From the NCBI GenBank assembly GCA_000320545.1, contig ADNK01000104.1, positions 14,698-78,697 on the forward strand: 64,000 nucleotides of DNA, written 5' to 3'. The notes beneath the pieces were generated by a model. That model was not told where the DNA came from, did not search any database, and was given only the letters and a program-made list of their open reading frames with translations. The position numbers and the translations under genes are program-made. This DNA is from Bigelowiella natans CCMP2755. Lineage: Eukaryota > Protista > Cercozoa. Position 1 is the stretch's first letter; each line of letters begins with the position of its first letter. Of this stretch, positions 14,414 to 63,559 are shown one piece after another.

Positions 14414-15033
14414 AACAAGGATAATTTACATGGGAGCACAATTAATTCGATATTTGTACATCTCCAAGCACAAGTGACGTCATTCATTCATTAAATGATG
14501 CGTGGTACACGGATAATGTACACATGCTTCATAAAATACAAACCCACGAATTTGGTTGCGCCATCTACCAATTACCTTACATTATTTAGTCACATGCATG
14601 GCCCCGATTTACTATGGCAACGACAATATCTTTATGATTTTCCCCACATTTTTTTAATATGTAGTTACACATATATACAATATCTATATGAATTTAAACG
14701 TATAGTCTCTCTACTCAACCTGCAAAACATGCTAGGAAGTAAGAACAAGGAGGGTAGCATAACTGAAGGCTCTGCACCGCTGCAATTGAATGTGAAGGTG
14801 TTGGCAGCATGTTATGCATGCCGGAGCATTGTAGTCATAGCAATGAATGACTGCCGAAGCGTCTGCATTGTGAATGTACGAGCAAGATTTGCTGCGCAAG
14901 CTTCTGCAGCGTTGATGATTATTTTATTGTTTTATACGTGCTTCTAAATCACTCTGCATGCTGACTACCAATACTTTCATTGCAATACGATATTATCACA
15001 TAGACGTAAAAGTTTCTCTTCTCCCTCCCCTCC

Positions 15034-16101: not shown

Positions 16102-19100
16102 ATGGATATCCGCAATTTTTTCTCCCTGTCGGGTGGCTCGAAGAAGAAGAAGAAGAAGACAAAGACTGTGAAAAAGTCTTCTGGTGATGATGTGACGGAG
16201 AACGAGTCCCCAAAGAATGCTACCCCTAAGTCGGCGAGGAAAGCTTCCTCGCAGAAGAAAAAGAAGTAACTTTCTGAATTTTGCGCTTGACACCTTTCAT
16301 TGATCACCTAATGTTCAAATAGGCGTAAATCTGAAGGAAGTAGTACTCAAACCAGCCGTAAGAAGCGCAAATCAAAAATAGTAGTCTCCGACAGTGACAG
16401 CGAAGACGACATCGATGACGACATCGATGATCCTATTGATGACACTGTCGATGATGATGAGGACTTTGTGACACCAGTATCAAAGAAAAAAGTAGTCAAA
16501 TCTCCAGGGAAGAAAAGAACTGCAAAGAAGAAAGCATCGAAGAAGACTCCGCAAAAGTCGCCTAAGAAGACACCCAAAAAGGCAAAAAAGACCAAAAAGC
16601 CAAAAGGTGCTCCTCTATTTTCCTTAAACGAGTGAAACTAACATACCGTATTATCTATTCTTTTGTTCAGAGGAGATAAAAGAGATCTCGCCAGAAGACT
16701 TTTTCAACAGTGGTAGCAGCAGTAGCAAGAAAAAGGTCAAGAAATCTGAAGATACTAGTTCGAACGACGAGGATATTAATCTGGCCAAGGCTTTGTCTCT
16801 TTCCGAGTCAGAATCTCGGGAAGAAGCTTCGAAACCAAGTACATCACATTACTTTGAACAGACAGAAGGCAACACTGGTAAGAAGGAGAAGAAAAAAAAG
16901 GCGAAACGACGAGATACCACCAAAAAATTTAACTGGCAGTGGAAGTCCGATTTGAATGCGAAAAGCACGAAAGGCTGGACAGATTACTCTGAGGACGATA
17001 ACAAATTCCTGCAAGAAAATTGGGAGAGTGGAGAAGAAGTCGTTGAGCTTCCCAATGGCTACTCTGTGAATTTGGAGCAGATGATACAGTTCAAGACTAA
17101 AGACCCTCACAGACAAAGACCTATCCAGAAAGTAGTGAAGCCTCCATCATCGCGAAAGGGGGCAAAGACAACGAAGAGCGATGACAACGGTGATAACAAG
17201 GAGAAAAGAGATCTAAAACTGGAGAAACAAGCTAGTGTAAAGAAAGAGGATGAGAAGAAACAGAAAGTCAAAGTTGAGAAGGCTGATATGCCCAAGAAAG
17301 CGACTCCCCCACCCCCCTTGACTAAGCAGGCTTCTGAGCCTCTTCTGGTACGTTGTAAGAAAACGTTTTAAACAATGAACATATGCGTTTTGCTCTATGT
17401 TTGGGGAATATTTGCATTGTAGCTCAACAAGTGTACATCATCACGTCCCTATCTTTCAGACAACTGGCACCGCATCGTCGAACTCCGCGGCTGGGACGAA
17501 GAGAAAGTGGTCAGATTCATTACGTATTTCCTTACCCGAGAGTGTAGCAATCGAATATGGATTGCTTTGTCTCAATCGAGTCCTTACAATCACATTACCA
17601 TGCAGGTATCCCGGGATGCAGAGGGGAGCGCCTCCAAAGGCTGGACAGAAGGAGATTCCCGAAGGAAAACCAAACTGCCTCCAAGGCCTCACCTTTGTAA
17701 GCCCCCTTTTCGACTTTTGCAGTGACTCTTAAGCAATATACTTAATCAAGTAATGTTGCAGCCATTATGGTTGAGGAGATACCTACACTAACATTTTTTC
17801 ATTTGACCATAAGCGTTGGCCTTTCGACCGAAATGAATCTTTGTCATGTATATTTTTCTGGATCGTAGGGTGAACTTCCAAATGTTTTTTAGGTAATCAC
17901 TGGAACTTTAGATTCGCTAGAGAGGGACGAGGCCGGCGATTTGATCAAACAATATGGAGGGTATGTGAGCCTATTCGCCTTCATTTTTTGATTCCCCTTT
18001 TAAAAAATGGGTACATTTCAATTGAGGCAGCAACCTGTAGTTACGATTTTCCTCCCCCCCCCTTCCATGGCGAAGGCGTGTGACAGGGGGTGTGAGTGGA
18101 AAGACTTCGTATCTCATCGCCGGAGCGGAAGCAGGAGCAACTAAGATGAAGAAGGCTGAGCAAAAAGGTCGGAGAATGAGTAACCTCGCGACTACCTATT
18201 TGCTTTATACGGCCTCTTGCAAAGTAAAAGCATCGGCGATGCTTCTTCAGCGCTGATATCTTTGTTGCAAGAGCAAAAAATGTCGCTGTTTTCGGCACTG
18301 TTATGAAAACATTGGTACTGTTGACTTGTTTTGATTTCCTGTGTTCCTTTCTTTGCTTTGTGGTCATCTTGTCTCTGCTGTCTGAACACTGGCTAGGCGT
18401 GAAAGTCGTAGACGAAGACTTTCTTCTGAACTTGATCAGATCCAGGGAATCCCAGGCGGCACCAACTCCCAAGCCCAACAAGAAGCGCAAAACATCCAGT
18501 GAGCGCCATTTTCAATCAACTATCCCCGAACAAAATATTGTGCGATGATCGTGTTGAGGCAGTGAAGGAAAACACAAAGGGCCCATCTCTAAATCCACCC
18601 CCTTCCCCATCTGATAGGTTCCGTTAAGTCAGGAAAGCAGGAGGCGACGTCCGCATCGACTGCTTCCACGGGTGAAAGCGGAGCGATGCTCTGGGTTGAT
18701 AAGCATAAACCTAAGGGCCCGAGGGACCTCATTGGAAACAACTCCAACATCAAGAAACTCACCACATTCCTCAACGACTGGAGGACGGCAATGCAGAGAA
18801 AGAACACGAGCGGTATCAAGAAGAAGGCCGTCCTCCTCGCTGGGAATGCGGGCCTGGGCAAGTCTTCCGCCGCCGAGGTTGTCTGCCGGTCGCTAGGGTT
18901 CAACAAGATAGAGTCTAACGCCAGCGACGTGCGCAACAAGGCCCACCTCGAGCAAAAGATCGTCGCAATCGCGCGCAACCGCGGAATCATGGAGTTCATG
19001 GGGGGCGCGAAGAAGAAAGGGGCTGGCGGGCCCACCTGCCTTGTGATGGACGAGGTGGACGGCATGTCCGGTAATTCAGACCGGGGAGGAATGCAGCTCC

Positions 19101-19475
19101 TCATCAAGATCATTAAGAGTACGCAGGTTCCGATCATCTGCATCTGCAACGACTCCAACTCGCAGAAGATGCGCAGCCTCAAGAACTACTGCGAGGTACT
19201 CAAATTCCGACGGCCCACCGCCGCCCAGATCGCGCCGCGCATCATGAGGGTTCTGGAAGCGGAAGGTATGAGGGTGGAGAGGAATGCGCTGGAGCAAGTG
19301 GTCGATGCTACGAGGGGTGACATCCGCCAGATACTCAACCTCATGCAGATGTGGAAGAAGAAGAAGGACAACCTAAAGTACACTTGACAGCATCCTCCTA
19401 TTTTTTTTTAATTGATTTCCCTGAATGCTGAGAGTCGGGCAGTTGCCGTTTAGTGGACATAGAAACACACGAACA

Positions 19476-19528
<53 letters not shown>

Positions 19529-20577
19529 CCTTCGCCCTAACCCTTGATGTGGATCAATACTGAACTCTTCTATGCTATCCACCCTGCCCTGCTCATCTAC
19601 CTTGCAGCTACTCCGACGCCAAATTCAAGATGGGAAAGAACAGTGGCAAGGACTTCGACCTAGGACCCTTTGATGTTATCGGGAAGGTCTTCACCCCCGA
19701 CTTCAAGAAGGGCTTCGTGATTCGAAAGTCCGAGCCCTACTTCGTGGATTTCTCGCTGATGCCGCTCATGGTGGAGGAGAACTACCTCGGGGTGCGGCGG
19801 TTCGCAAACTCCCCTCTCGCCGACAAATCAAAGCGCGCGGACGTGCAGGAGCTTGAGGCGTTAGCGATGGCTGCGACCTCGTTCAGCGATGCCGACTTGT
19901 GCGACACGCAGCTACGCCGCAACCAGGACTACTCCCTCATGCCGTACCACGCGGCCTTCACGTGCGTCATCCCCGGGTCCTACCTCGCGGGGGGGCTCGG
20001 CCGGCCAGCCTTCCCGTCCTGGCTAGGAAAATTCAGCAGCCGGAACAAGAACAAGCGGTTCTTCGACCTGCTCAAGGCCAACATGAGCGTGGACTCGACC
20101 TCCAGCGCCACCGACCTCGCCCTCTACCAAATACCGCATCTCCGCCGCCAGATGCTGAAGCCGATGATAGACGAGGGGCTCGATGGTGTGGACACCGTGA
20201 TCAAGACCTTGGACGAATATAGCCTCGACCGAAACGACTGGGAGATGATCTCCGAGCTCGGCACACGATTCGGGAACCCGCTGAGTCTGAAGCAGATCCC
20301 TGGGAAGATCAAGGCTGCTTTCACCCGCACTTACAACCAGAAATCCCACATGCTCAAGGTCGCGAGGCAGGATCTGAAGGCCGTCCGTCGCAAGGCCAAG
20401 GCAGAAGCCAAGCGTGAGGCGGTTGGAGGAGACGGGGAGGATGACGTTGACGACGAGGACGAGATGCCCAGCAGCAGCAGTAGTAGTAAAGGGAAAACCA
20501 AGGGGAAAGCCAAGAAGAGGACGGCGCCGAAGAAGAAGGGAGGCGCGAAGAAGAAGGGGGGAAAGAAGAAAAAGTAA
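16102..20577 (+). CDS. RFC1: Replication factor C large subunit with added UIM and WWE domains
   Basis: N-terminus MDIRNFF; BRCT (GKPNCLQGLTF|VITGTLDSLERDEAGDLIKQYGG|RVTGGVSGKTSYLIAG); RFC box LWVDKHKPK; Walker A GNAGLGKS; Walker B LVMDEVDGMSGNSDRGG; PIICICND; RFC1 C-domain FPSWLGKFS and KIKAAFTRTYN. Confidence 0.96.
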
Positions 20578-20967
20578 TTTAGTGATGATTGAGGCAATTA
20601 GGACCGCAACCTATAGATTGAATGCGCGCGCTGGAATTGTATGCATTGCGGGATCATAGTTATTAAATTGAAGACAAGAACTATTCGAGAAATGATGATG
20701 CTTATCGCCGACTATGCATTAGCTAGTTAGCAGCAAATACAAAAAACAATGTAGCTAGGTAGCTGCATGCGCAATGCCGCCTAGCTAGCTAGCATGATCG
20801 TAACATCGAACTCTGCCCGCCACGTTTTTCAAGCAATGTGTGCCATGCGCTCATGCTACACATGCTAGCATGTGCACGGCATCAACATGCGGGCATGCTG
20901 GCATGCGGCATGCGGTCACAGCAGACGTCATGACCCCATGCACATCCATTGCAGCAGACCACCACAC

Positions 20968-21240
20968 CATACCCCACATTTCATTTCCCATCTGCCGTCA
21001 GTAGGGGAACGACACAAAATTTTCATTTCAAAAATTCACCTGCTACTGACGACCTACTGCTGAACTAAATTGCTAGAATGACATGGCAAAATCGCACGAG
21101 CATGACATGTCAAGTGCCCCACATTTGATTTCCCATCAGCAATCAGTAGCAAAATGTGCAAAAATGCGCAACATGAAAGCTTTGCCTACCATGTGTTTTG
21201 TGATAACAATCTTTGTTAAAAATGACATAGCAAAATCCAC
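20968..21240 (+). repeat. Two tandem ~146-bp copies of a dispersed repeat; an inverted copy is at 24931-25052
   Basis: CCCCACATTT(C/G)ATTTCCCATC starts near 20971 and near 21117; both units end AATGACAT(G/A)GCAAAATC; internal inverted pair CGTCAGTAG / CTACTGACG. Confidence 0.75.
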
Positions 21241-21369: not shown

Positions 21370-23500
21370 CTAAAATCTTACTGGATCGAGTTTTACGACT
21401 ACGAACCTCAAGTGCTTGTGCCAGGTTTTCTTCCACGCTTCCTGGTCAGATTTTGACACGTCTTTGTAAACGAAATTCACACGGAATGTATGATAATGCT
21501 TCTCCAAAGTGTAGTAGTAAATCGTGACAACTTTCGTATCCACAAGAACCTCGTCTTTGTGTTTGACTTTAAAGTCGTGAACATTTCCTTTAGCCATCTG
21601 ATGCAGCACCTCAGCACTTGAAGCACCATCTATGTTTGTGTAGTTCGGAGGGCAAATGACCAGCGTGCTCGAATCCTTCAATTCGCGGATTTCCTCCAAG
21701 CACTTATTCTTTTCTTCCTTACTATTTTCGCGATGGTGAATCACTCGTTTGTGTCGACTAAATGAGACAGTGGTAGTCTTGCCTTTCAATTCTTCTGGTA
21801 AATGTGAGCCGACATGTCGGCCTTCAAAATTTCCCCCATTCTTTATGAGGTGAAACCACCTTCTTTCTGCCTCTAAACCAGACATACTTTCACTCTGCTT
21901 AGACTGTTCCTCGGCAAGCGCCCCTACCACTCTGGATTCTACATAAGGGCTCAGGAAATCCAGGACAAAATCCGAACTAGTGTGCGAACCGTCTTCAAGA
22001 ATGGGGCGGATGCAGAACACGGAACTTGGTAAAGCGACATCCCTAGGTTGTATCATCTCCACGTTTTCGCCAATCTTGCCCTGAAACATTCGCAACATGT
22101 GGTCTTGGGAGTCTTGAAACTTCTTGAACTTTTGCTCGTCCACAATGTGCCGCAACATCCCCCCGGCTATCTCGGATCGGCTTTTTAAGTCCTCGACAGT
22201 ACAGTTTCCATCCGCCCCGCCACTCTCATTGTTTCCCGCAGAAATATCGTTGAATTCATCTTCTTGGATGACATCCGCATACAAGGTGAGATCCCGCTTC
22301 TTCGTTCCGGCCTTAAGGAGTTTCTCGACTTGCTTCCACTCCTTATTGGGCGAGCTTGCCACTACCACAAAGGCTTTTGTGATGTTGACATTTAGGTGCC
22401 CGAATCCGTTCTCGGGATCGACGACAAGGTGTGTCGAAGTAGAGTCAAAGCTTTTCCATTCTTCACTGTGGAATGTTAAGGGGGTAACTACAGATGTTGA
22501 ACACTTGACTGTACCGTTCTCGACGTAGATGCAGTAAAGGATACCCTCTGGCACGGAATAGAACGCAACCTTCTCGTCATTTTTAAGCGCCACCTTGATG
22601 TACATTAGCAAAAAGGCCACATTCTTGGCTATACCACTTTGCCCAGAGAGTATACAGCAATCAATGCTCGACTTTCCCTCACGGTGAAGTTGATAACATT
22701 CTCGAAATCTGCGTACTGCTTCTGAAAATGCCTTGCGGTAGAAAAGAGTAACAGGGTGCTTGGACCCCCGAATCCAACTAGCACGATGCCCAGGTACGAG
22801 GATGTTCTTCGTTATGCGCACCAGCTGCATTGCAGTCCCTTTTGTGAACGGAGTGTCTCTCAAAGCTTGGAAAAATTCTTCGGCATCCGTGTCAATCTTG
22901 AATCGTTTGCCTGTGTATCCACGTAAAGCGGGACTATCAAACGATACTTAGAGAGGATGAGTCTAGTCACCTTTTGTTTTGCTTCCTCGTTCGTAATCCG
23001 ATATGCTTTTGCGCTTCTCCCCTGAAATCAAATCACAATAAAATTAGAACAATAGATTATTTGCACAGAGACATTGGGCATCACCCCCCCCTCCGCTTTC
23101 CTCAATTTCCATGGCTGAACACACACGCAAAAATATCTCAGCACAACGATTGTTCCTCAGATGTTGACAAAATTCATAACCTTGGGTTGCCTTCTCATAT
23201 TTCTTTGTTATTTCCTCCAGCTTTGCCTTCTCCGCCTGGATTTCCTCGTCCAATTTGTCAATAGCACCCTTGAGCGCCTCTTCTTTCTCCTTATTCTTCT
23301 CCTTTGCCCAAGCGATGCTCAAAGCTTTTCTTTCTTCCCTCAGTTCCAAGATTTCCTTCTTTGTAAGTTGGATCTGAATTCCCCATACCTCAGAACGCTG
23401 AGAACACATCAAAGCTGCTTAAGCTCCCGAACGCAAGCCTCGTAGGATAAGTACCTGTACTTTCGAACTTCTCCCTTCATTTTCATCATCGTATTGCTTC
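21370..23500 (-). CDS. Crinkler/RHS-type (CR) protein: N-terminal coiled coil + P-loop NTPase + PD-(D/E)xK-like REase; 5' end uncertain
   Basis: The 497-aa exon has LFYR, degenerate Walker A ILSGQSGIAKN, HLVVDP, VVVASSPN, RSEIAGGMLRHIV, FLSPYV, GLEAE and PPNYTNIDG...HQMAKGNVH. Upstream spliced exons encode a coiled coil (KKEILELREERK...KKYEKATQ) and join in frame via short GT-AG introns at ~22910-22970 and ~23025-23180. Confidence 0.7.
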
Positions 23501-23732: not shown

Positions 23733-23913
23733 TCTTCACCGGAGACTCTCCATGCGGGCATTCCGGGATATATAAATGGGAGTCCCTAATATCTTCGGAC
23801 ACTAACCGACACTAAGGGGCACTAATGGACAATAATGCTCTCTCCGGGGATTCGCAGCTGGGAGAGTCTCCGTGAAGATCTTCACAGACGAGACTCATTA
23901 GAGTCGATGAAGA
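23733..23913. repeat. Hairpin/MITE-like element: 18-bp inverted repeat enclosing four 10-bp direct repeats, followed by a second collapsed hairpin
   Basis: TCTTCACCGGAGACTCTCC (23733-23751) pairs with GGAGAGTCTCCGTGAAGA (23861-23878). The interior has GGACACTAA, CGACACTAA, GGGCACTAA and GGACAATAA. It is followed by TCTTCACAGACGAGACTC...GAGTCGATGAAGA. Confidence 0.7.
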
Positions 23914-23929
23914 AGCGGGAGGACCTTCC

Positions 23930-24800
23930 TCGGATGGGGTAGATTATTATCAATTCTATCCACAGAAACATTATCAGCAGTAAACTTACATTTACACAGG
24001 GGACAAAAAGGATATTTACCAGCAATTCTACTTACCCATTTATCATCAATATATTCTTCATCTTTCCAAGTTCTACCAGCTCTTTTATCTTGGGATTTAT
24101 ATGAAGATACTTTCATTCGTAGTTTTTGAGTAATCATAGCATTCTTTATAGCTGTGCTGATATATTTGTATCTGTGAAAGGTCAGTTGAACGAGTTATAG
24201 CAGTCCAGAGCCACTTGCGATTAATTCTACAGGTGTTAGCATCGAATACGGTGATAGGGCCATCTACTGATAATCCTTGAAAACTATGACAGGTAGAGGC
24301 ATATGATAATCTAAAATGCTTACTAATTAATTCTATAGGAATTCTTATTTCTTCCATATCACATACATCTTGTATTACAAAATCTTTTTTGTTTACTTTG
24401 ATAATTTCATAAGTGTAGTTCACATATAGTTTTGGTTTCTTCTTATACTTTTTACATACAATCTCCATACCAGCATAGTAGCAAATACCATCTACACAAA
24501 CTTTTTTTCTCGGTTACTTTTGTAGGCCGTGTATATGCTTACCTACTGAACGGGATCTAAAGTTGTAGAAGGTAATATTGTTAAGTGTCTTTACTTTATC
24601 CATACTTTTCACAACTTTAAAATATTTTTTTAATACATCAAATGGTTTAGTTTTTACATCAAACATTTCTTGTTTTAATTGTGCGAGAGCATTTCTTTCC
24701 TCATCTGTTTTTACTCTTTCACATATTTTAAGAGTGATTTGGTTAGGAAACACAGCATTCATCGCTTCAGTTGTTCTGACATCAAGGTCTTTGATGTGTT
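23930..24800 (-). pseudogene. AT-rich, intronless fragment of an SF1B (RecD/Pif1-like) helicase C-terminus fused to a Zn/HNH-like nuclease; probably from an endogenous DNA virus or Polinton-like element
   Basis: Helicase motifs FRLSYASTCHSFQGLSV and KWLWTAITRS; then YKSQDKRAGR...CPLCKCKF...VSVDRIDNNLPH. There is a premature TAA at 24514-24516, a frameshift near 24140, and both ends are truncated. Confidence 0.7.
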
Positions 24801-24930
24801 ATTAAACAGATATTTGTTTTTGTTTTCAAATGAGGGCTAAGTGTGGATGGACCTGTGACTGCTGTTTGACACAAACAGGTTGTTTTCATAAAAGACATGT
24901 GATGTGCCCATCTAGCTAGCTGTGTTTTCA

Positions 24931-25052
24931 CCATGTCGTCATTCTGGCAATTTGGTTCAGCAGCAGGTCGTCAGTAGGCAAATTTTCATGTTGCGCATTT
25001 TCGCATTTTTGGCGCGTGCCGATGGCAGGGAAATGAAATGTGCGGGGCATGG
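24931..25052 (-). repeat. Inverted copy of the 20968-21240 repeat
   Basis: The reverse complement reads CCCCGCACATTTCATTTCCC...AAAATGCGCAACATGAAAATTTGCCTACTGACGACCTGCTGCTGAACCAAATTGCCAGAATGAC, matching both left-hand units. Confidence 0.8.
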
Positions 25053-25963
25053 TCCATGCACACATGCACGGTAGCGCACCATGTCGTCATTGTTGTCATC
25101 CGACGAAGCCCTTCATCTCTCTTGAGCTTGGCGCATGCAAAAACAATCATCCTGGACCACGTGTTGTGTTGCACGTGATGTCATGCACACATTGCACAAC
25201 AAGTGATTCAACCCCAACGGAGTTGGAAAAAAATGTGATTGGTTCATTTTGAATGGCGGAATCAAGGCTTTCGATTGCGCGCGCCCAATAACTTCAGCTC
25301 CAACCGACCTCTGGCGGCTGCGAGAAAACTCATTTTTTGATGATGGACACAGCAATGCATGTCTGTCATTTTGTGAAGGTGCGTTTGAACTAGATGTGGC
25401 GTTGGGGTGAGGTTGCAGGTCTTGAGATGGAATTTTGTGGCATTGCGCGTGCAGAACGAAGCGCACCATCAAAATTGACGCACGCGCCTTGTTCAAGCGT
25501 GGGTCATGCTGTCGCATCCAGCAAGCCAGCCATGCAGCCAGCAAGCACTACGACCATTGTCTAGATTGTAGCTGCAGCTAGATGTTGCGTTGCTTGCATC
25601 ATTGTGATCACCGTGCCATGGCTAACAATCATCATTGCTACGTGCATTGCGCCATGGCGTCAGAACGTTGGACTGTGACAGGTGCTAGCATGTGCTGATC
25701 TGAAACGCTCACTAAAAAGTTCGATCTACAGGAATTCTTGTTTCTTCCATTTCGCACACATCAATGACAAAAAATTCTTTTTTACTCACTTTTGTGATTC
25801 GTAGGTGTAGTTTACACATAATTTTGGTATTATGCAAAATGCCATGCGCGCGGTTTGAACTGGTTGTGGCAGGGCGAGAAGTCCAGACAAGCTCTTAGTC
25901 ATCGATGTCATTTTTGAAGCGCGCGCAGCAGAGAGAATATAGTTTTATTCATCTTGTACAAAT

Positions 25964-40131: not shown

Positions 40132-41599
40132 CTCCTCGATAACGATGTAAAATGTTGTAAAAAGAAGATTGTTATGGGTGTTGGTTCTATGCTCTACAGC
40201 GGCATGGACTCTTCTGGAGGGTGAATGAGGAGCAAGGGGCGCCTAAGGTTTCCCTCTAGGGTTGTTACGATCAAAACGAAATGCATCCATTTTTTGTCCT
40301 GCGACAATGCTATAACCGTTGCAGCAAACACCTTTCGCTGCATTTCCGTGGGAATTTGAACATCCAGACGCTTGCAAGTCGTCATGACTTACGATTTAAG
40401 TTCCTAGAGTTCGTAGCATCATCCGGATTTGTCGTTCATAGCGAACGCCTTTAAAAAATTTCCTAGACCATTCCAATTTCCAACTGACCCAAAAAAATAA
40501 ATGCGATGTAAATGAGTGAAATCCTTGGAAATTCCATTGTTTTTTAACATGACGACAATGATCGAATGAAATCTTAAATGAGAAACGAAAACTTTCTGCT
40601 CGGCTCCCAGAAGAGAGAAAGAAAGTTGTTCGATGTTCGGCTCCAGCCAGGGAAGGAAAGGTCGTGTGACGTTCGTCATCGACCTGGAAGAACAAGGTGC
40701 CACAAATGACAGGATGGTAGATCCATGATATGATTATTGATGTTCCTAGGTTGAGTAAGAACTCGCACAGCAATGCAAATACAACCGAAAGAACATGTTG
40801 TCCAAGGTCAGTCTTGTGCGCATGCACACGTAGGTGCGTCCACGCGGCGTGCATGTGGGTGACGGATGACTTTCACAACTTCGAAATGAGGCAATGACGA
40901 CTCTTGCCTTGTCAATTAGGATGGTGAGGGAAGAGCTTGGATCAGAAAAGCCTAGATTGGGAGCCTAGCTGCCTCATCCTTGCGGGCCCACACCATCATT
41001 CGCGCTCAAATGCGAGTCGCAAAACGAGTTCTGTTTTTGGTTCCTGGTGCCAGAGTGGTCTGTCATGACCCACAGTGAGAAACGAGTTTCATGCATGGTT
41101 CATGCCGAATGATGCATGCAGAGTTTCTTGTTCAAAGTGGACACGTGGATTGATGGGAAAAAAAGGCGAATCAAAACACGTTTTCTCGAACATTGAAGTG
41201 TGCAATGTTGCAACGCTAGAACGTGCTAGCGTACATAGTTCCAATCACATCCGAGCGAGCGTCCTGATTGAAGATCGAAGATCTGAGTTCTGCTTCTGGT
41301 GTGCACGGATGTACTTGTTGGAGGGGCGCGTGTGACCGTCGCACGTTCACTCGATCAGGCGTGCACGTGAACGACTGCATCGTGGATGCAGCAATGATGT
41401 CGTTTCGGCTGTGCGTGCATGAGCCGGTAAATGTGTTCATGGCATTGACCGATAGTTACCGTCAATGACAAGTTTCCTTCCCGAATGAATTCATCGTGGA
41501 CGAATGTCCGTGTGTTTTTCTCTTGCGACAACGCCTCTTGGTCAACTGCTCTCATGCTTTTCAAAAGCCATCGGTCCCAAAAGAGCACGTGTAGCTGCT

Positions 41600-41860
41600 C
41601 GCAAGGAACGAAAAAAGAAACTGACCCTTGAAGGACACACAAATCACATGTTTGGCTGTGCGTTGTCTGCAGACGCGGGAAACTTGCGATGTCTGAAATC
41701 AGGGACCAAAAATGCACAACTTGGAGAAATTTTAGACGGTGCACAAAACTGCACACCCTCGAAGGACACACAGAAAAGGCGACTACTTGCCATGCGTTGT
41801 CCGCGAACGGGAAGCTGGCGATTTCGTGCCTGATGGCAAAAACTCATCACCTGGAAAACT
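41600..41860 (+). pseudogene. Degenerate WD40-repeat fragment inside a TpA-depleted island
   Basis: LTLEGHTNHMFGCALSAD and KLHTLEGHTEKATTCHALSANGKLAISC lie in different frames, so the fragment is frameshifted. Confidence 0.65.
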
Positions 41861-42334
41861 TCAGGTGGGGCTCAAGTGCACCCCACATCCTGAGCACGTG
41901 CATGTGCATCCCGAGGCGTGCAACGATACGCATGCCAGCATGTGCATGTGAGACGGCGATGAACTTTTGCACTCGCTTCAATGGTGTAGTCATCCCACTA
42001 GCGCAGCCATGCAAAGCTGCGGCCACCGCTTGGCCGCTAGACCGCGCTAGCTCATCTAGTCATGCATGTGACTCCAAGCTAGATGTCCAGATGTCTAGAC
42101 AGAGTCAGCGTGCTGGCAGTATTTCGCAAATTTGGACACACAAATAGACAATAAAGAACATTATTGCATGCCTACTGTTGTCTACTGTTCCGTTGAACGA
42201 CAGACATTTGCACGTGCTGCAAAAAGTCAACATGCTGCTGTGCAAGTTCATTATCAGAAGGCCAGGAAGTGACAAAAGGCTAAGTTGGCAGGTGTGGTGC
42301 AGTGGACGAGCAGTGTTATCCATTGAATATCCCA

Positions 42335-45920: not shown

Positions 45921-46355
45921 TCCTAGCATGCATATTAGGGTTTTGATCGTTGTATGCGTGGCCGACGCGCGCCATAGAACCTCCTCATAATACTCGATGG
46001 GTGGTAGTATCGAGCGAGCCGAGGCACATTCTCTCTCAACTGCTGGAAGTAATTGATGGGGGAGAAGGACGCAGAGTGTACTATTGTTCCCCCTTGAGCG
46101 GTATTCTGTCGAATAGGATGACATGTTTTCACGAATCGGTTATTGGAGAGTGGTGCGACAATAGAGCTATGTTAGAACAAGAGCGGCGAAGTCTCCTTTA
46201 GATCTCACCAGTCCCACATCGCTTTTCCCTGCTACCCCAGCAGCAGAAGCGTCAGCAGTAACCCAGTGTGGCGAGTGTGGAGAGGCGCACTGCACGAACA
46301 GCAACAAGAGAAGGGACACAGGTAATGGGAAAATGGTGACCACCTCTCCCGCCAT
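42335..46355 (-). CDS. GT8 (glycogenin/galactinol-synthase-like) glycosyltransferase-fold protein with signal peptide; DxD apparently lost
   Basis: VVALSESLVRTGSIFPLTVLVS; WGLLHAFGLTQ|YSAVCVLSPKTLVFRNMDDLL (canonical Y..hhYLDADTLV..NIDELF); AAVPLCTC...CPYC; FGGRLLLFRP; EAFLNDYFK|YQWASLPCEY; ends GDSWFK*. Confidence 0.65.
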
Positions 46356-46804
46356 ACACGTATTCGCGGTTCGCAGGCAGATCTGCCCCCCTTCCCCCTC
46401 AGTAGGCTTGGCTGCTCGCTTCTGGCTGCCCTTTCCGAGCGAGTTATTAGGCTCCCCTTTTCACTTAAGAAGCAGTTCTTAAGAGCGCGCGCTTTAAGAA
46501 CATAAATCCGATGGGGACAGGTTTCACGCGGCAGGTGTGTTCTCAGAGTGTTGTCTTTGTTGCTTTCACCTTTTTGCTGCTGCTGCTGAAAATATTTCCA
46601 AAAAAATCACTAAACGAATGGTCCTAATTTTGGATCTGTGTTTAGATAGTTATTTTGCGATATATTATCGGTTTAGTGATCACATGCATGTTCATCAACC
46701 GTGATTCACAGTAATCTACAGTTGCTTCGGGTAGGGGCATTTCGATTTGTTCTTGGTAAGTGTCCCATTGATTTTCTGTTACATTTGCAAGGCATTGAGC
46801 ATGT

Positions 46805-46935
46805 TGATCTGACCTACCGCTGTTGTGTTTGCACACACCGCTGTTGCACTCACGGTGATCCAACCCACCGCCATTGTGTTTGCGGTGATCTGAACCACCG
46901 TCATTGTGTTCACAGTGATCCAACCCACCGCCATC
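46805..46935. repeat. Decayed 30-bp tandem repeat, ~4.5 units
   Basis: Consensus TGATC[..]ACC[..]CCGC[..]TTG[..]TT[..]CRG, where the bracketed columns alternate between TG, CA and TA. Confidence 0.8.
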
Positions 46936-48532
46936 AAACACGTCCACGTGAAAAGTGTTCACGGTTGCACTTCATTCTTTTGGACACAGTCTCGAAAGAA
47001 AGAAAGAAAGAAAAGCTGTCATCATTGTTGAACGACCTGAACACACCTCCAAAGTGAGTTGCTCAAATTTCAACACAATCCATTTGGCCAAAACGAAGCA
47101 AGACATCCAACACACACACCCTGCTCACTCTCATTCCTCGCACGTGATTTGCGTTTGATTGGTGTTGCACACATTGACGTGTTCATTGCGTCCGTCTCAG
47201 TGCGTGCAGGGATGATGACAAGAAACGCATTCACAGTCGACGAAAGAGCAAAGATGTGTCTTGTACACACGCTGATCATGACGGACACAGCAATGGGATG
47301 TGCAATGTGTGCTGCGTGCATCACATTGTTGCGTGTCCATTTGTCAAAGACAGACACAGTGCATGGTGAGGTGTGCCAGCTGGCCAGTGTGTGATCCAGT
47401 GATGCAATGCATCGTGTTGAAGGCATGCTAGCATGTCCATCATGCTGCACTGGTGCGTGCGCACAGATGGCAACAATCGCCTCAAACAAGTGTGCATGTG
47501 CAAGAGCCAGACTTGGCACGTGCAGGCCGACGGAGGTTTGCACGCGATGCACGTGCCATCGTCGCATCGCGATTGCGCTAGCGCAGCACCGACCATCGAT
47601 CGTGCATGTTGCAAGTGCACCGGGTTGCAGCATCACAGGTCTAGCAGATGTCTTGCTTTGCGCACACCATTAGGAAGTGCAGATGGACCACGCTCGTGCG
47701 ACCGGCGCACGTGGAGAGTTGAATGATGGCCAGCCTGATCATTTTGCTAGCTTGGCTGTCAGCCAAAAGTGAAAGATCTAAATCAACTTCTGTGGTCATT
47801 TCGAGTAAAAATGTGCGAAAAACAACATTGGGAAGTGAAGCGTCGTCGAAAACGAAAAGGGATTCTTGTTATTTCACATCAATGTAGTTCGTACAAATGT
47901 GTTTGTTGCACTTGCGGTGCGGATGTTCATTTTGTCAGCAGAGCGAGGCTCTCGCGAGCGCGAGGTTCCACATTGCATTGTAAGAGTTTTTGTGAATAGT
48001 TTGCATGCAAGCATGTGTGTGCTCTAAACGCGCACGCTACAAATGTCAGAGCCAGCGAACTTGAAACGCTACATACCTCGCTTAGCTACATCACAAGCAA
48101 ACACGGACACATGCTATTTTTCATTCACGCAAAGTAAAAACATATGCGATTATAAGGGATAAAAATTTTAAAACTTCATCAGAGAGCTTACTTTCCCACG
48201 GATTAAGCTGCGCGCTTTATTTAGAACAAGTAGCCGACCAGCGGCTACTTTTAGTAGTGGATGTATCCCTCATCATGAGCGGTCGGGTACTTGAGTGCAT
48301 GCTACCAGTCTTAAGAAGAAGACGGATCATACTGGCCACTTCTTGCTGCTATTTCATTGCTGCTATCTCATTCCTGCTTGCTTCGACTCCGTTCCTTCGA
48401 TTAACCACGCGTGCCGCCGCTGATAAAGGAAAATGGTGGGCAACACATTAGGGAGTAATCATGCCACTCAGTACATGTGCGGATCTATGTGTGACAGTTG
48501 TAAGAGCATTTTCTTCGTCACTAACGCGTCAC

Positions 48533-49653
48533 TTACATAACGTTGCCCCCCGAGATGTTAAGATCGACACCAGTCATATAGGAGGCTTCGTCGGAGAGGA
48601 GGAAGAGCGCTGCGTTTATCACTTCCTCGACATCTCCAGCCCGGCGCATGAGCACGGAGCCTGACGACCAGAACACAGAATCATTGTTTGTGACTGCAAT
48701 GCTTATGTGATGACGATAAAAGGGTGAAGGACGCTTGCTCTTCCTTTCTTTCTTCTTTCTTTCTTTGTGCCGTAACCCAAATGGGGAAAAAATGAGAGAG
48801 GTCTTCGACAGCAGCACAGTTTTTCGTTTCGACACAAACGAGATCTTCTAACGTTGCCAAAGATGACGGACGATGCACTCTCCCACGCCCTACCCCCACT
48901 ACTCCCCACCGACCTAACATCTGCTTCTCGACGACATCGATGTCGTTGGAGAAGTAGAATTCTGGGTGCCCGGTCGGATTTCCATCAGCTTGGAGCTGAA
49001 CCTGGAAGGTGGGGTGGAGCAAGACATCCAACGACGACAGAAGTTAGATTTGATATACGGAAGAAGCCGGTCCCCGCCACCATCTCTCATTGGAAATATT
49101 GCATCCTCGCCTCAATTTATTTACATTATTATATTATATGATGTGCAGGAAATACTGGATTATTTCCAACAATCATCAGCGATTCTACTCCCCAAAACGT
49201 CGTGCGGTGTGAAATTCAACGACGATTCTGATTCTCTACACAACCACTATGATCGTGTTGCCATCTTGGGAAGTCAACGTATTATAATTTTCGCGAATAA
49301 CCTTCACTTTTTTAAGCCTGAAAATTTTGTCATGCTTAGACCCTCACTCCTCCTCTCCGCCCCCCCCCTTCCTTCTGCGTTGTTTCGCCATACCTGTCGG
49401 CGCCACATCATGCCATCCTCGGGACCGATGTAAGCAGGGGAGATAGAGTTGACTCGGATCTTGTGCGGTGCGAGGTCGACAGCTGCAATCTTAGAAAGAT
49501 GGTTCACTGCCGCCTTCGAGGATCCGTAGGCGCACATCAGAGTAGGGCAGCCGAGCCCCGCGCACGATGCGGTGTTAACGATCGATCCTGGGAAGAGAAG
49601 GGGGGGGAGAGCACACGTATAAGTGTATAGGTGTACGGACGAGGACATCCCTT

Positions 49654-49697
<44 letters not shown>

Positions 49698-50653
49698 TCT
49701 GTCCAGCAATCAATATATACATATTGTATGTGTGTGTGTGTGCGTGGTGTATGAAGTTCATTTCTCACCGAGTGAGACCTGCGTACTCCTACACTCTGGA
49801 CAATAAATTCTATTTCTTTACCTGCTGTCTTCCCTTCGATCATTGCAGCCGAGGCGTACTTGAGAACAGAAAAGAGCCCAACAACGTTAATGTCAAAGAC
49901 ACGCTTGAAATCGTCCACTGGATACTTATCTACTGGCTCGAAAGCGCCCTGATGGAGAAAGGAAAACGTGATGAGGATTAGGTGTGCATGTGGGAAAGAG
50001 AGGAGAGAGAGTGAGAAAGAGAGAGAGGGAGGGAGGGAGAGAGAGAGAGAGAGGAAAAAATTAAACCCCCGCCATCTTATCACTCTCGCACAAAAACACA
50101 AACGCAAAACAAAGGATTTAAATAAATAAGCACATGTGTGTGTGTGTGTACAAATATTAACACCTGGTAGCCCGCGTTGTTAAAAACGCCGTCGATGGAG
50201 CCAAACTCTGCGACAACCTCGTCAACCATGTTCTTTACTTTCGCCTCATCCGTCAGGTCCATACCGAATGGCGCTGCTTTTACACCGTAGCTCTTGACCT
50301 CCTCCGTTACCTTCAAAAATTTGATTTGTACGCAACGGTGGAAGTTAGATCGCTCGCTCACTAGCAATAAGGCAGGCCCACTGTACGAAGGCAGATGGAA
50401 TCGTCCTCATGTTATACGGAATAAGTATGGAATATAAGTATTGTTACCGATGGAAGATTGTCCACTGCGAGGTCAACCAGCGCTACGTTCGCACCCTCTG
50501 CAGCGAGCATCTTAGCAGCAACACCGCCGAAGTTCCCAGCTGCACCAGTAACGATCACATTCTTCCCCTCGAAGCGGTTGCCACGAGCAGGGTACTTGGT
50601 GGCAGTGCTGAAAAACCTGATGACATGTTGAAAGGGAGGGGGAGTGAGTGAGT

Positions 50654-50702
<49 letters not shown>

Positions 50703-50944
50703 GGGCCAATAAGTAACCCAATTCTGATGTACAGTCTACGTGATACGTGACACGTGACACGTGACATGTAATGACGGACGAGAATAAATGCGGATCTCAT
50801 GGCGATTTACGCTCATGATCACGAAAACAGATATGGATTCTGCAGCCCATGCAACATTGTCTGTATGATGAACATGGGAAGAGGAGGAGGGACGGAATGG
50901 GCATACCTGGAAGGGGATACGAGACGGCGAAGGGAGCGGTTCAT
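48533..50944 (-). CDS. Short-chain dehydrogenase/reductase, NAD-dependent xylitol/polyol dehydrogenase-like, with mitochondrial-type presequence
   Basis: MNRSLRRLVSPSRFFSTAT; TGAAGNFG; NNAGYQ|GAFEPVDKYPVDDFKRVFDINV; catalytic YGSSK; IRVNSISPAYIGP..MMWRRQ|VQLQA..YFS; GSVLMRRAG..SYMTGVDLNISGG. Confidence 0.9.
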
Positions 50945-62180: not shown

Positions 62181-62722
62181 CCTTTTTAGTAACTGGGGGA
62201 CCCGAGATATCCTTCGGCGCGCCTGTGCCACGATGTGAATCCTTCTAGGATAAGCCGGGCGCTCAACACAGACTGATGGCTAGGAACCTTTTCACCTATT
62301 GTCAGGACATGCTTCGATGCAGAAGACTAAAATTCTCTCACGGCGGGGGGCTTTTCAGGCATGTTCCGCTTCGACTACCTCGTGCTCTGCACCACGTCAC
62401 AGTTCGTAGAAGCAGTTACTGCTTCAATTCACGAGAAGGAATAGATGAAATATCATCTCTACGACAACACCAATTTCAAGTCGCACACACGAAATGCTGA
62501 CTCCCTGTGACAGCTTGGGTCTCCTTTAAATAGATTTTTCTGACATCATTTTTATTAGCTTGAATCGGTCATGATTCCAGACCTGCGACAACCTTTTTCT
62601 TGAGTTTTCTTGTGAACGTGTGCAAGACATTTTTCAGCAGCAAGGACGCCAAACCACCCAGGTGGGACGCACGTGCGCGCATTCGTTCGGGGCTGAGCAA
62701 ACCTCTTCGCTTTGTGGGAACG

Positions 62723-62875
62723 ATGTCAATGGAGATTTTCGTCAAATTTCTAATGAACAAGACCCTCGTTCTCGATGTCGAAAGCCCCGACTTGGTCTTG
62801 CTAGCTTGACCATTGAAAGGATGATCGAGGACAGAGATTGTTCCCCTTGCCAGCTCAATCAGCAGAGGTTCACTT
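62723..62875 (+). pseudogene. Degenerate ubiquitin-like sequence
   Basis: MEIFVKFLMNKTLVLDVESPDLV, a frameshift, then IERMIEDRDCSPCQLNQQRF; compare ubiquitin [23 protein letters not shown]...IQDKEGIPPDQQRL. Confidence 0.65.
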
Positions 62876-63559
62876 GTTTTTGTTGTTCTTCTTCTGGATC
62901 TCATCTGAAGTCTCAAGTAGTTGAGGTCGTATCTTCATTCATTCATTCATCTTGTGGTGACTCCCAATCGTAGCTAGCTAGCTAGCCCTCGGTTGCACTC
63001 TGTGCATCAATTGGGCCATGACAGAGGCACACAGTGCGACTGGACGAGAGCAGACGCGTGTGACGGTGCATGAATTTTCGCAAGAAGTGAAAGGACCTGC
63101 AATGATGCGGAGTGCGCACGTTTCACTTTTTGTTCGTTTGACAGTGAACAGCAACAAGTCAATGATGCATTGGGAATTCATTGTGAACAATTTCTTCGTT
63201 CAGGTTGTTCTGGTGTGCTCAGTGCTCAGAATGTTTGCAATTGCACTGTATGCTGCTAAATGTGCGCGAAGCGCTCGGTACGTGAGCATAGGTGTAAGTA
63301 CAAGTGGTCAGGGTGTGGGGTTCACAGAGATGATGACGATTGATGCGCACAAATGTGCACTACTTCCACCTCACAAGACAAGCGACGATTGCACATGCAG
63401 TCAAGTTACCAGCATTTCTTTATTGATCGAACCTTCACATCCAAATCAGCACAGTGTCAGTTTTTTACAGTCATATGCGCATCACTTAGAAATGTGCAAC
63501 CGACGTGGCTAGGTGGCATGAGTGCATAGACGGGCGCGCCATGCAGCACATACCTATTC

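Follow-up and report, generated by a model that had tools for sequence, protein, structure and literature searches.

What has removed the dinucleotide TpA almost completely from about 1 kb of intergenic DNA in Bigelowiella natans, and is the process responsible a new one? The locus lies in a contiguous stretch of 64,000 nucleotides, analysed in full and referred to here as the window. The island is very probably the near-saturated end state of a TpA-specific DNA hypermutation that has already been described in B. natans, of which it is one more footprint.

The TpA-erased island and its setting

The island and related features of the window are as follows, with slow contexts being those that contain CTA or TAG:

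about 46790-47800, no strand: core TpA-erased island; intergenic, single-copy and non-coding, with one fast-context TA in about 1 kb
46703-46938, + strand: five degenerate 30-bp tandem units (at about 46703, 46796, 46847, 46877 and 46907) at the left edge of the island
47429, 47579, 47642 and 47748 (CTAG) and 47671 (TTAG): surviving TA sites in slow contexts
47264 (GTAC): surviving TA site, the sole one in a fast context
47800-48100: partly eroded shoulder toward the 3' end of the SDR gene, with slow contexts predominating at 48000-48100
48536-50735, - strand: short-chain dehydrogenase (SDR) gene (adh_short, adh_short_C2), whose last exon ends at 48536 and whose 3' end faces the island
46170-46354, - strand: putative first exon of the left gene, signal-peptide-like, predicted from translation only and with no Pfam match; its 5' end would face the island
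24901-25550: sister TA-poor island, 7 TpA versus 40 expected
40801-41950: sister TA-poor island, 16 TpA versus 70 expected, in an old family of dispersed repeats (82-85% identity)
62501-62950: weaker TA-poor patch, 8 TpA versus 32 expected

The scarcity of TpA given in the preliminary description is confirmed. Positions 46820-47760 hold six TpA compared to 55.0 expected from base composition (observed/expected, o/e, 0.11; window 0.73), and six or fewer would occur with a probability of 7e-15 at the window-wide rate, with no correction for selection of the stretch by eye but a very large margin. Four of the six are CTAG, a tetramer expected 0.2 ± 0.4 times in dinucleotide-preserving shuffles, and the longest TA-free gap of the 64-kb window (449 bp) is located inside the island. 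Eroded shoulders extend to about 46700 on the left and 48100 on the right. CpG is as abundant as had been described (o/e 0.84 versus 0.88 in the window), and the region 14521-14700, used earlier as a TpA-rich contrast, is indeed such (22 TpA, o/e 1.08). CpA and TpG are each at an o/e of 1.90 in the island and AA is at 0.95. The tetramers TGCA (21), CATG (7), CACA (19) and TGTG (12), also described as enriched, are more frequent than expected from single bases (about 3.7) without exceeding dinucleotide-preserving shuffles (14-17) and, thus, are not independent evidence. By arithmetic on the counts, 80-100 conversions starting from DNA of 41-43% GC with ordinary dinucleotides would yield the island.

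The assembly searched for relatives comprises 91,405,885 bases in 3,736 contigs, with transition-tolerant alignment applied to the retrieved loci. By DNA, degenerate-pattern and transition-tolerant alignment, the only relative of the island is the island itself, the top scores of the alignment being compositional noise. We infer that the island is a relic of a silenced repeat or insertion past the 3' end of a gene; as it has no detectable relative elsewhere in the genome, an origin from a repeat is unproven. Seven island frames have no match in Pfam. The open frames are rich in Cys and His, as expected where TAA, TAG and Tyr codons are erased. The other copies of the repeat family at 40801-41950 are likewise TA-poor.

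Hypermutation reported for B. natans

Hypermutation of TpA to TpG or CpA is measured in B. natans mutation-accumulation lines, where two viral inserts gained 231 de novo mutations, about 1000 times the background rate and nearly all of this type (Mettrop et al., bioRxiv 10.64898/2026.01.13.699255). The same preprint reports 124 clusters of windows that are poor in TpA and rich in CpA plus TpG, finds TpA-poor genes enriched in transposon domains, draws the comparison with repeat-induced point mutation (RIP), proposes an ADAT2-like deaminase, and considers only five annotated adenosine deaminases. A TA-directed mutation of repeats, put forward earlier as undescribed, is thus not novel, as both the process and an ADAT2 candidate are in the preprint. 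The species, the change and the TpA-low, CpA+TpG-high signature are shared, and the island lies beyond both 5% cut-offs of the preprint (TpA 0.11, cut-off <=0.43; CpA+TpG 1.90, cut-off >=1.52). The earlier observations concern viral inserts and clusters of at least three 1-kb windows, whereas the island is non-coding and about 1 kb in length. The main text of the preprint is also without a flanking-base rule or a copy-by-copy polarisation of transposons; the flanking-base rule, the giant-virus-like deaminase candidate and the tyrosine-free reverse transcriptases described below are not in that text.

Our hand count of Table S2 of the preprint (bioRxiv 10.64898/2026.01.13.699255) assigns 206 of the 211 de novo mutations of the giant-virus insert to TpA to TpG/CpA. 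The preprint numbers correspond to a rate of about 1.1e-5 per TpA per generation, at which 95% erasure takes about 270,000 generations and background divergence is then 0.01%, which is consistent with the presence of both intact and saturated siblings of similar age. The de novo small insertions of Table S2 are mostly CA/TG-rich, and many have ACA at their end. This unexplained footprint of repair or of a transposon contributes to the CA/TG patchwork seen in spacers.

Direction of change

Within the island, the aligned columns of the tandem units include TA/TG/CA in one, TA/CA in another and TG/CA in others. While an alternation of TG and CA alone could stem from CG, the retained state in the tandem columns is TA, and these few columns appear to polarise the change. 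A 40-nt core of the 24901-25550 island matches 21043-21082 in inverted orientation with three differences, all of TA versus TG/CA; the erased copy is the one in 24901-25550.

Retroelements provide the larger sample. Reverse-transcriptase searches of the genome returned 60 loci, and the spectra of LINE copies were obtained by pairwise comparison of real copies to an intact real copy, L052. Relative to L052, the copy L068 has 140 of 146 TA sites converted (70 to TG, 69 to CA and 1 to CG), and L060, L061, L066 and L070 are similarly converted. Overall, about 95% of the TA sites of these copies are converted, equally on both strands, versus 0.4-1.6% for other NA to NG changes (AA to AG 1.6%, CA 1.0% and GA 0.36%), and TA to CG double changes number only six in the LINE comparison. 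The polarised repeat spectra proposed in the preliminary description, thus, have TA to TG/CA as the dominant direction rather than CG to TG/CA (137 versus 10 in L068) or TG/CA to TA (merely 1-5 events per copy). Together, the tandem units, the LINE copies and the inverted pair at 21/25 kb bear out the earlier proposal that TA is converted to TG/CA on either strand in repeats.

The conversion is visible at the protein level. The catalytic YCDD motif of the LINE reverse transcriptase is replaced by CCDD in two copies and by HCDD in another, while the copia copy L015 has no Tyr in 985 residues and has CVDD in place of YVDD. Open frames of 430-985 residues without any tyrosine are found in L015, L041, L042, L067 and L069, and the TpA o/e is 0.00-0.01 across 3.5 kb in L015, L041, L067 and L069. 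Wild marine sequences related to the LINE at 52-73% identity retain Tyr and have a TA o/e of 0.6-0.8. Tyrosine-free retroelement frames may be of use as a protein-level marker in screening other species for the mutator. A 26-kb sample of Amorphochlora amoebiformis, consisting of intron DNA, has no TA-poor patch; the introns of this sample (L091) are extremely rich in AT and TA (TpA o/e 1.8), the opposite of the B. natans islands.

Element edges and spared copies

The 3' flanks of three saturated LINE copies, L068, L066 and L060, are TA-rich (o/e 1.8, 1.75 and 1.2, respectively), indicating that editing ends with the element. In L062 the conversion is graded, from 9 of 9 TA converted near the 3' end to 0 of 49 beyond 1.5 kb. 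One LINE family has about 13 copies that are intact and >99% identical alongside six that are edited, and two young copia families (L011-14 and L016-40) are untouched at a TpA o/e of 0.9-1.3. The sparing of these copia families and of many LINE copies indicates that the process is not a blanket defence against repeats. The choice between TG and CA agrees among LINE copies only slightly above chance, and editing is thus largely independent and post-insertion. As read from DNA sequence, the comparisons demonstrate the direction of change, its TpA specificity, its action on both strands of integrated DNA and its restriction to elements or tracts.

The last 700 bases of the intact LINE of the L052 family are themselves TA-poor (o/e 0.1-0.3) with TA in slow contexts only, and a wild marine relative is also TA-poor there (0.25). 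This 3' part may reflect either a past round of editing that became fixed in an active lineage or an avoidance of TA.

Flanking-base context

The context statistics are based on the window and about 33 loci, a biased sample chosen around transposon and gene matches, in which TA-poor windows total 44.7 kb. In these TA-poor windows, 84% of the surviving TA are in a CTA or TAG context; CTAG alone makes up 34% of the survivors there and 5% of TA elsewhere (odds 9.5, p 1e-17). Similarly, CTA/TAG sites of LINE copies are retained with odds of 8 to 9 (p 1.5e-4 and 3e-3). The CTA/TAG sites that were converted in LINE copies divide 68:67 between strands, without the skew expected if a 3' G alone mattered, and the site is thus slowed as a duplex. 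Retained and converted sites indicate slowing on both strands wherever CTA or TAG occurs, most of all at CTAG, with the 3'-G and the 5'-C both of influence. The earlier view that CTAG is protected is therefore correct in that CTAG is the slowest site, but not in that it is the only one.

The de novo mutations of Table S2, counted by hand and centred on A, comprise 67 TAA, 67 TAT, 52 TAC and 20 TAG. The TAG share is 9.7% compared to a background of 22% (p 6e-6), the latter estimated on the window together with 3.5 kb surrounding the capsid gene. These TAG events divide 3 to 17 between strands.

Mechanism and alternative explanations

The chemistry that we favor, at about an even chance, is that of a zinc-dependent deaminase of the TadA/ADAT fold, which would convert A to hypoxanthine at duplex TpA, with G fixed at replication because hypoxanthine repair is proposed to be weak. 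Each of the roughly 80-100 former TA sites of the island would have become either TG or CA through a change on a single strand; as the first conversion destroys the target, TA to CG is rare. Targeting would occur via heterochromatin or small RNAs, copy by copy. B. natans has a single heterochromatin state, marked by H3K9me3 and H3K27me3, on transposons and repressed genes (bioRxiv 2025.03.17.643675), and this state is a plausible guide for editing.

The main rival, which we regard as rather unlikely, is oxidation of the thymine in TpA of silenced DNA by a TET/JBP-like dioxygenase (to 5-hydroxymethyluracil, 5hmU, and then 5-formyl-U), a chemistry outside those of the preliminary description; the product would pair with G and give T to C as a by-product of a silencing mark. 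T to C at TpA is indistinguishable from A to G on the opposite strand; modification of T and deamination of A, therefore, produce the same spectrum and are not separable from sequence. The duplex-symmetric context effect (68:67) suits an enzyme of double-stranded DNA. By contrast, 5hmU itself pairs with A. In dinoflagellates, 5hmU is found preferentially at TA and TC and is concentrated on repeats (PMC11572971), yet no excess of TC to CC is reported in the mutation-accumulation lines. The Tet_JBP search of B. natans, an exon-split search for a divergent family, returned only one sub-threshold match with stops over a microsatellite (E 0.0014).

An improbable route is one in which silenced regions first acquire N6-methyladenine (6mA) at TpA, with G arising from it by deamination or miscopying. 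A methyltransferase would account for strict dinucleotide specificity at a palindromic duplex site and for the flanking effects. The known eukaryotic 6mA of AMT1 is instead at ApT and in active chromatin. One study of 6mA (PMC12695648) does not cover B. natans.

Still less probable is an origin of the island without conversion of TA, by CA/TG-rich micro-insertions, CpG deamination or a compositional bias of 3' spacers. Such an origin would be in keeping with the CA/TG-rich de novo insertions of Table S2, the CA-rich patchwork of an island with no detected relative, and some CG to TG/CA change in old LINE copies. However, micro-insertions often contain or create TA and so cannot yield an o/e of 0.11, CpG is undepleted (0.84 versus 0.88), the tandem columns keep TA rather than CG, and the survivors are in the same slow contexts as those of proven edited LINEs. 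CpG decay is likewise rejected as the source of TG and CA by the island CpG and the L068 spectrum (10 CG to TG/CA versus 137 TA to TG/CA). RIP is rejected as TpA is lost instead of made, with TG/CA to TA at 1-5 events per copy; thus, both had rightly been called misfits. A duplication-triggered RIP that hits all repeats above a homology threshold is rejected by the about 13 LINE and 25 copia copies that are intact at 95-100% identity.

Targeted error-prone synthesis of the pol-eta type (WA to WG), one of the mechanisms considered earlier, is very improbable: AA to AG is the commonest non-TA change, yet the AA rate should be near that of TA and is about 60-fold lower (1.6% versus about 95%), with AA at an o/e of 0.95 in the island. 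An ADAR-like editing of retroelement RNA prior to reverse transcription is hardly credible, even with a preference for a 5' U (discussed in bioRxiv 10.64898/2026.01.13.699255), since strands are equally affected within single copies (70 TG to 69 CA) and mutations build up in a silent DNA-virus insert of the mutation-accumulation lines. ADAR favors UAG, whereas TAG is spared here.

Candidate enzymes and repair genes

Intact genes for HxE...PCxxC deaminases are present in the genome and include ADAT2 (L084), an ADAT3-like (L077), a TadA-like (L074) and a giant-virus-like (L078) homolog. Exons that match Bn78255 (preprint File S1) are found on contig C1631, identifying the genome as that of B. 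natans, and a relative of the LINE clusters with a Bigna1 protein. The L078 gene (contig C2412, about 84000-84700) is intron-bearing, encodes HAE, LYVVR and SxPCxxC motifs, and is absent from the five candidates of the preprint. In a database search with one exon as query and full-length database proteins used for comparison, the deaminase is conserved among chlorarachniophytes, at about 70% identity in Amorphochlora, Lotharella and Partenskyella, with the next relatives in giant-virus-like contigs; the Atlas look-alikes are viral CMP/dCMP-type deaminases. L078 may be a simple nucleotide deaminase, and as an additional mutator candidate it is a lead only. Were L078 the mutator, it would be a natural adenine deaminase of double-stranded DNA.

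Since TadA-type enzymes need single-stranded DNA, an enzyme that reads the duplex is a better match to the symmetry with which C at -2 and G at +1 slow conversion. A tentative extension is that the mutator is not the housekeeping ADAT2 and is instead a dedicated reader of duplex TpA, either the L078 deaminase or a thymine-modifying enzyme, aimed at single copies by a silencing pathway. Of the repair genes, AAG/MPG had no match and EndoV one weak match of 19 residues in an exon-by-exon search of the genome, a type of search that does not show absence.

Relation to known systems

The process shares with fungal RIP (RID/DIM-2) the dinucleotide-specific, saturating transitions of repeats on both strands, which end near element edges and destroy coding capacity. 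The polarity is opposite, as RIP turns CpA into TpA, and the B. natans process further differs in affecting single-copy viral inserts in asexual lines while sparing many near-identical repeat copies. TadA/ADAT2, engineered adenine base editors and ADAR are also close systems, in that TadA and ADAR catalyze A to G with a 5' T preference; natural ADAT and ADAR instead act on RNA, and ADAR favors the 3' G that is disfavored in B. natans. APOBEC also mediates localized defensive hypermutation but edits C in single-stranded DNA and is usually strand-biased, in contrast to the equal strands of B. natans. The 5hmU that dinoflagellate TET/JBP enzymes place on transposons (PMC11572971) is also a TA-preferring, repeat-enriched modification of the A:T pair; by contrast, it is described as a silencing mark and not as a mutator, and the B. 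natans search found no convincing TET/JBP gene.

A natural, targeted mutator of A:T to G:C in DNA mirrors RIP and APOBEC, and identification of the enzyme behind it would bear on the evolution of genome defense and on adenine base editing. The present analysis adds to the reported process a profile against which candidate enzymes can be tested: a strict TpA target on both strands, slower conversion with C at -2 or G at +1, and few double changes. It also adds evidence that single transposon copies are edited as far as the element boundary, with sibling copies spared. Questions of enzyme and targeting become more testable with the duplex-symmetric context rule and with siblings that differ in being edited or intact. 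Loss of TAA/TAG stops and of Tyr codons also calls for caution in annotation, as it yields long Cys/His-rich pseudo-ORFs such as those of the island.

Other features of the window

An open frame of 497 residues (21370-22863, - strand) has Crinkler/RHS-like look-alikes (Atlas score 0.98) and has inverted relatives on either side, at about 20930-21145 and 24856-25145; it may be a mobile unit. An AT-rich and TA-rich fragment (23898-24762, - strand) with a UvrD-like helicase C-terminal domain is foreign-looking and unedited and adjoins the erased island at 25 kb. Within the island at 41 kb, 41689-42147 (+ strand) has a weak WD40 match (E 0.04) and may be an erased copy of a host gene. In the RFC1 gene region (16793-20577, + strand), an exon for a WWE domain is located upstream of the AAA+ domain.
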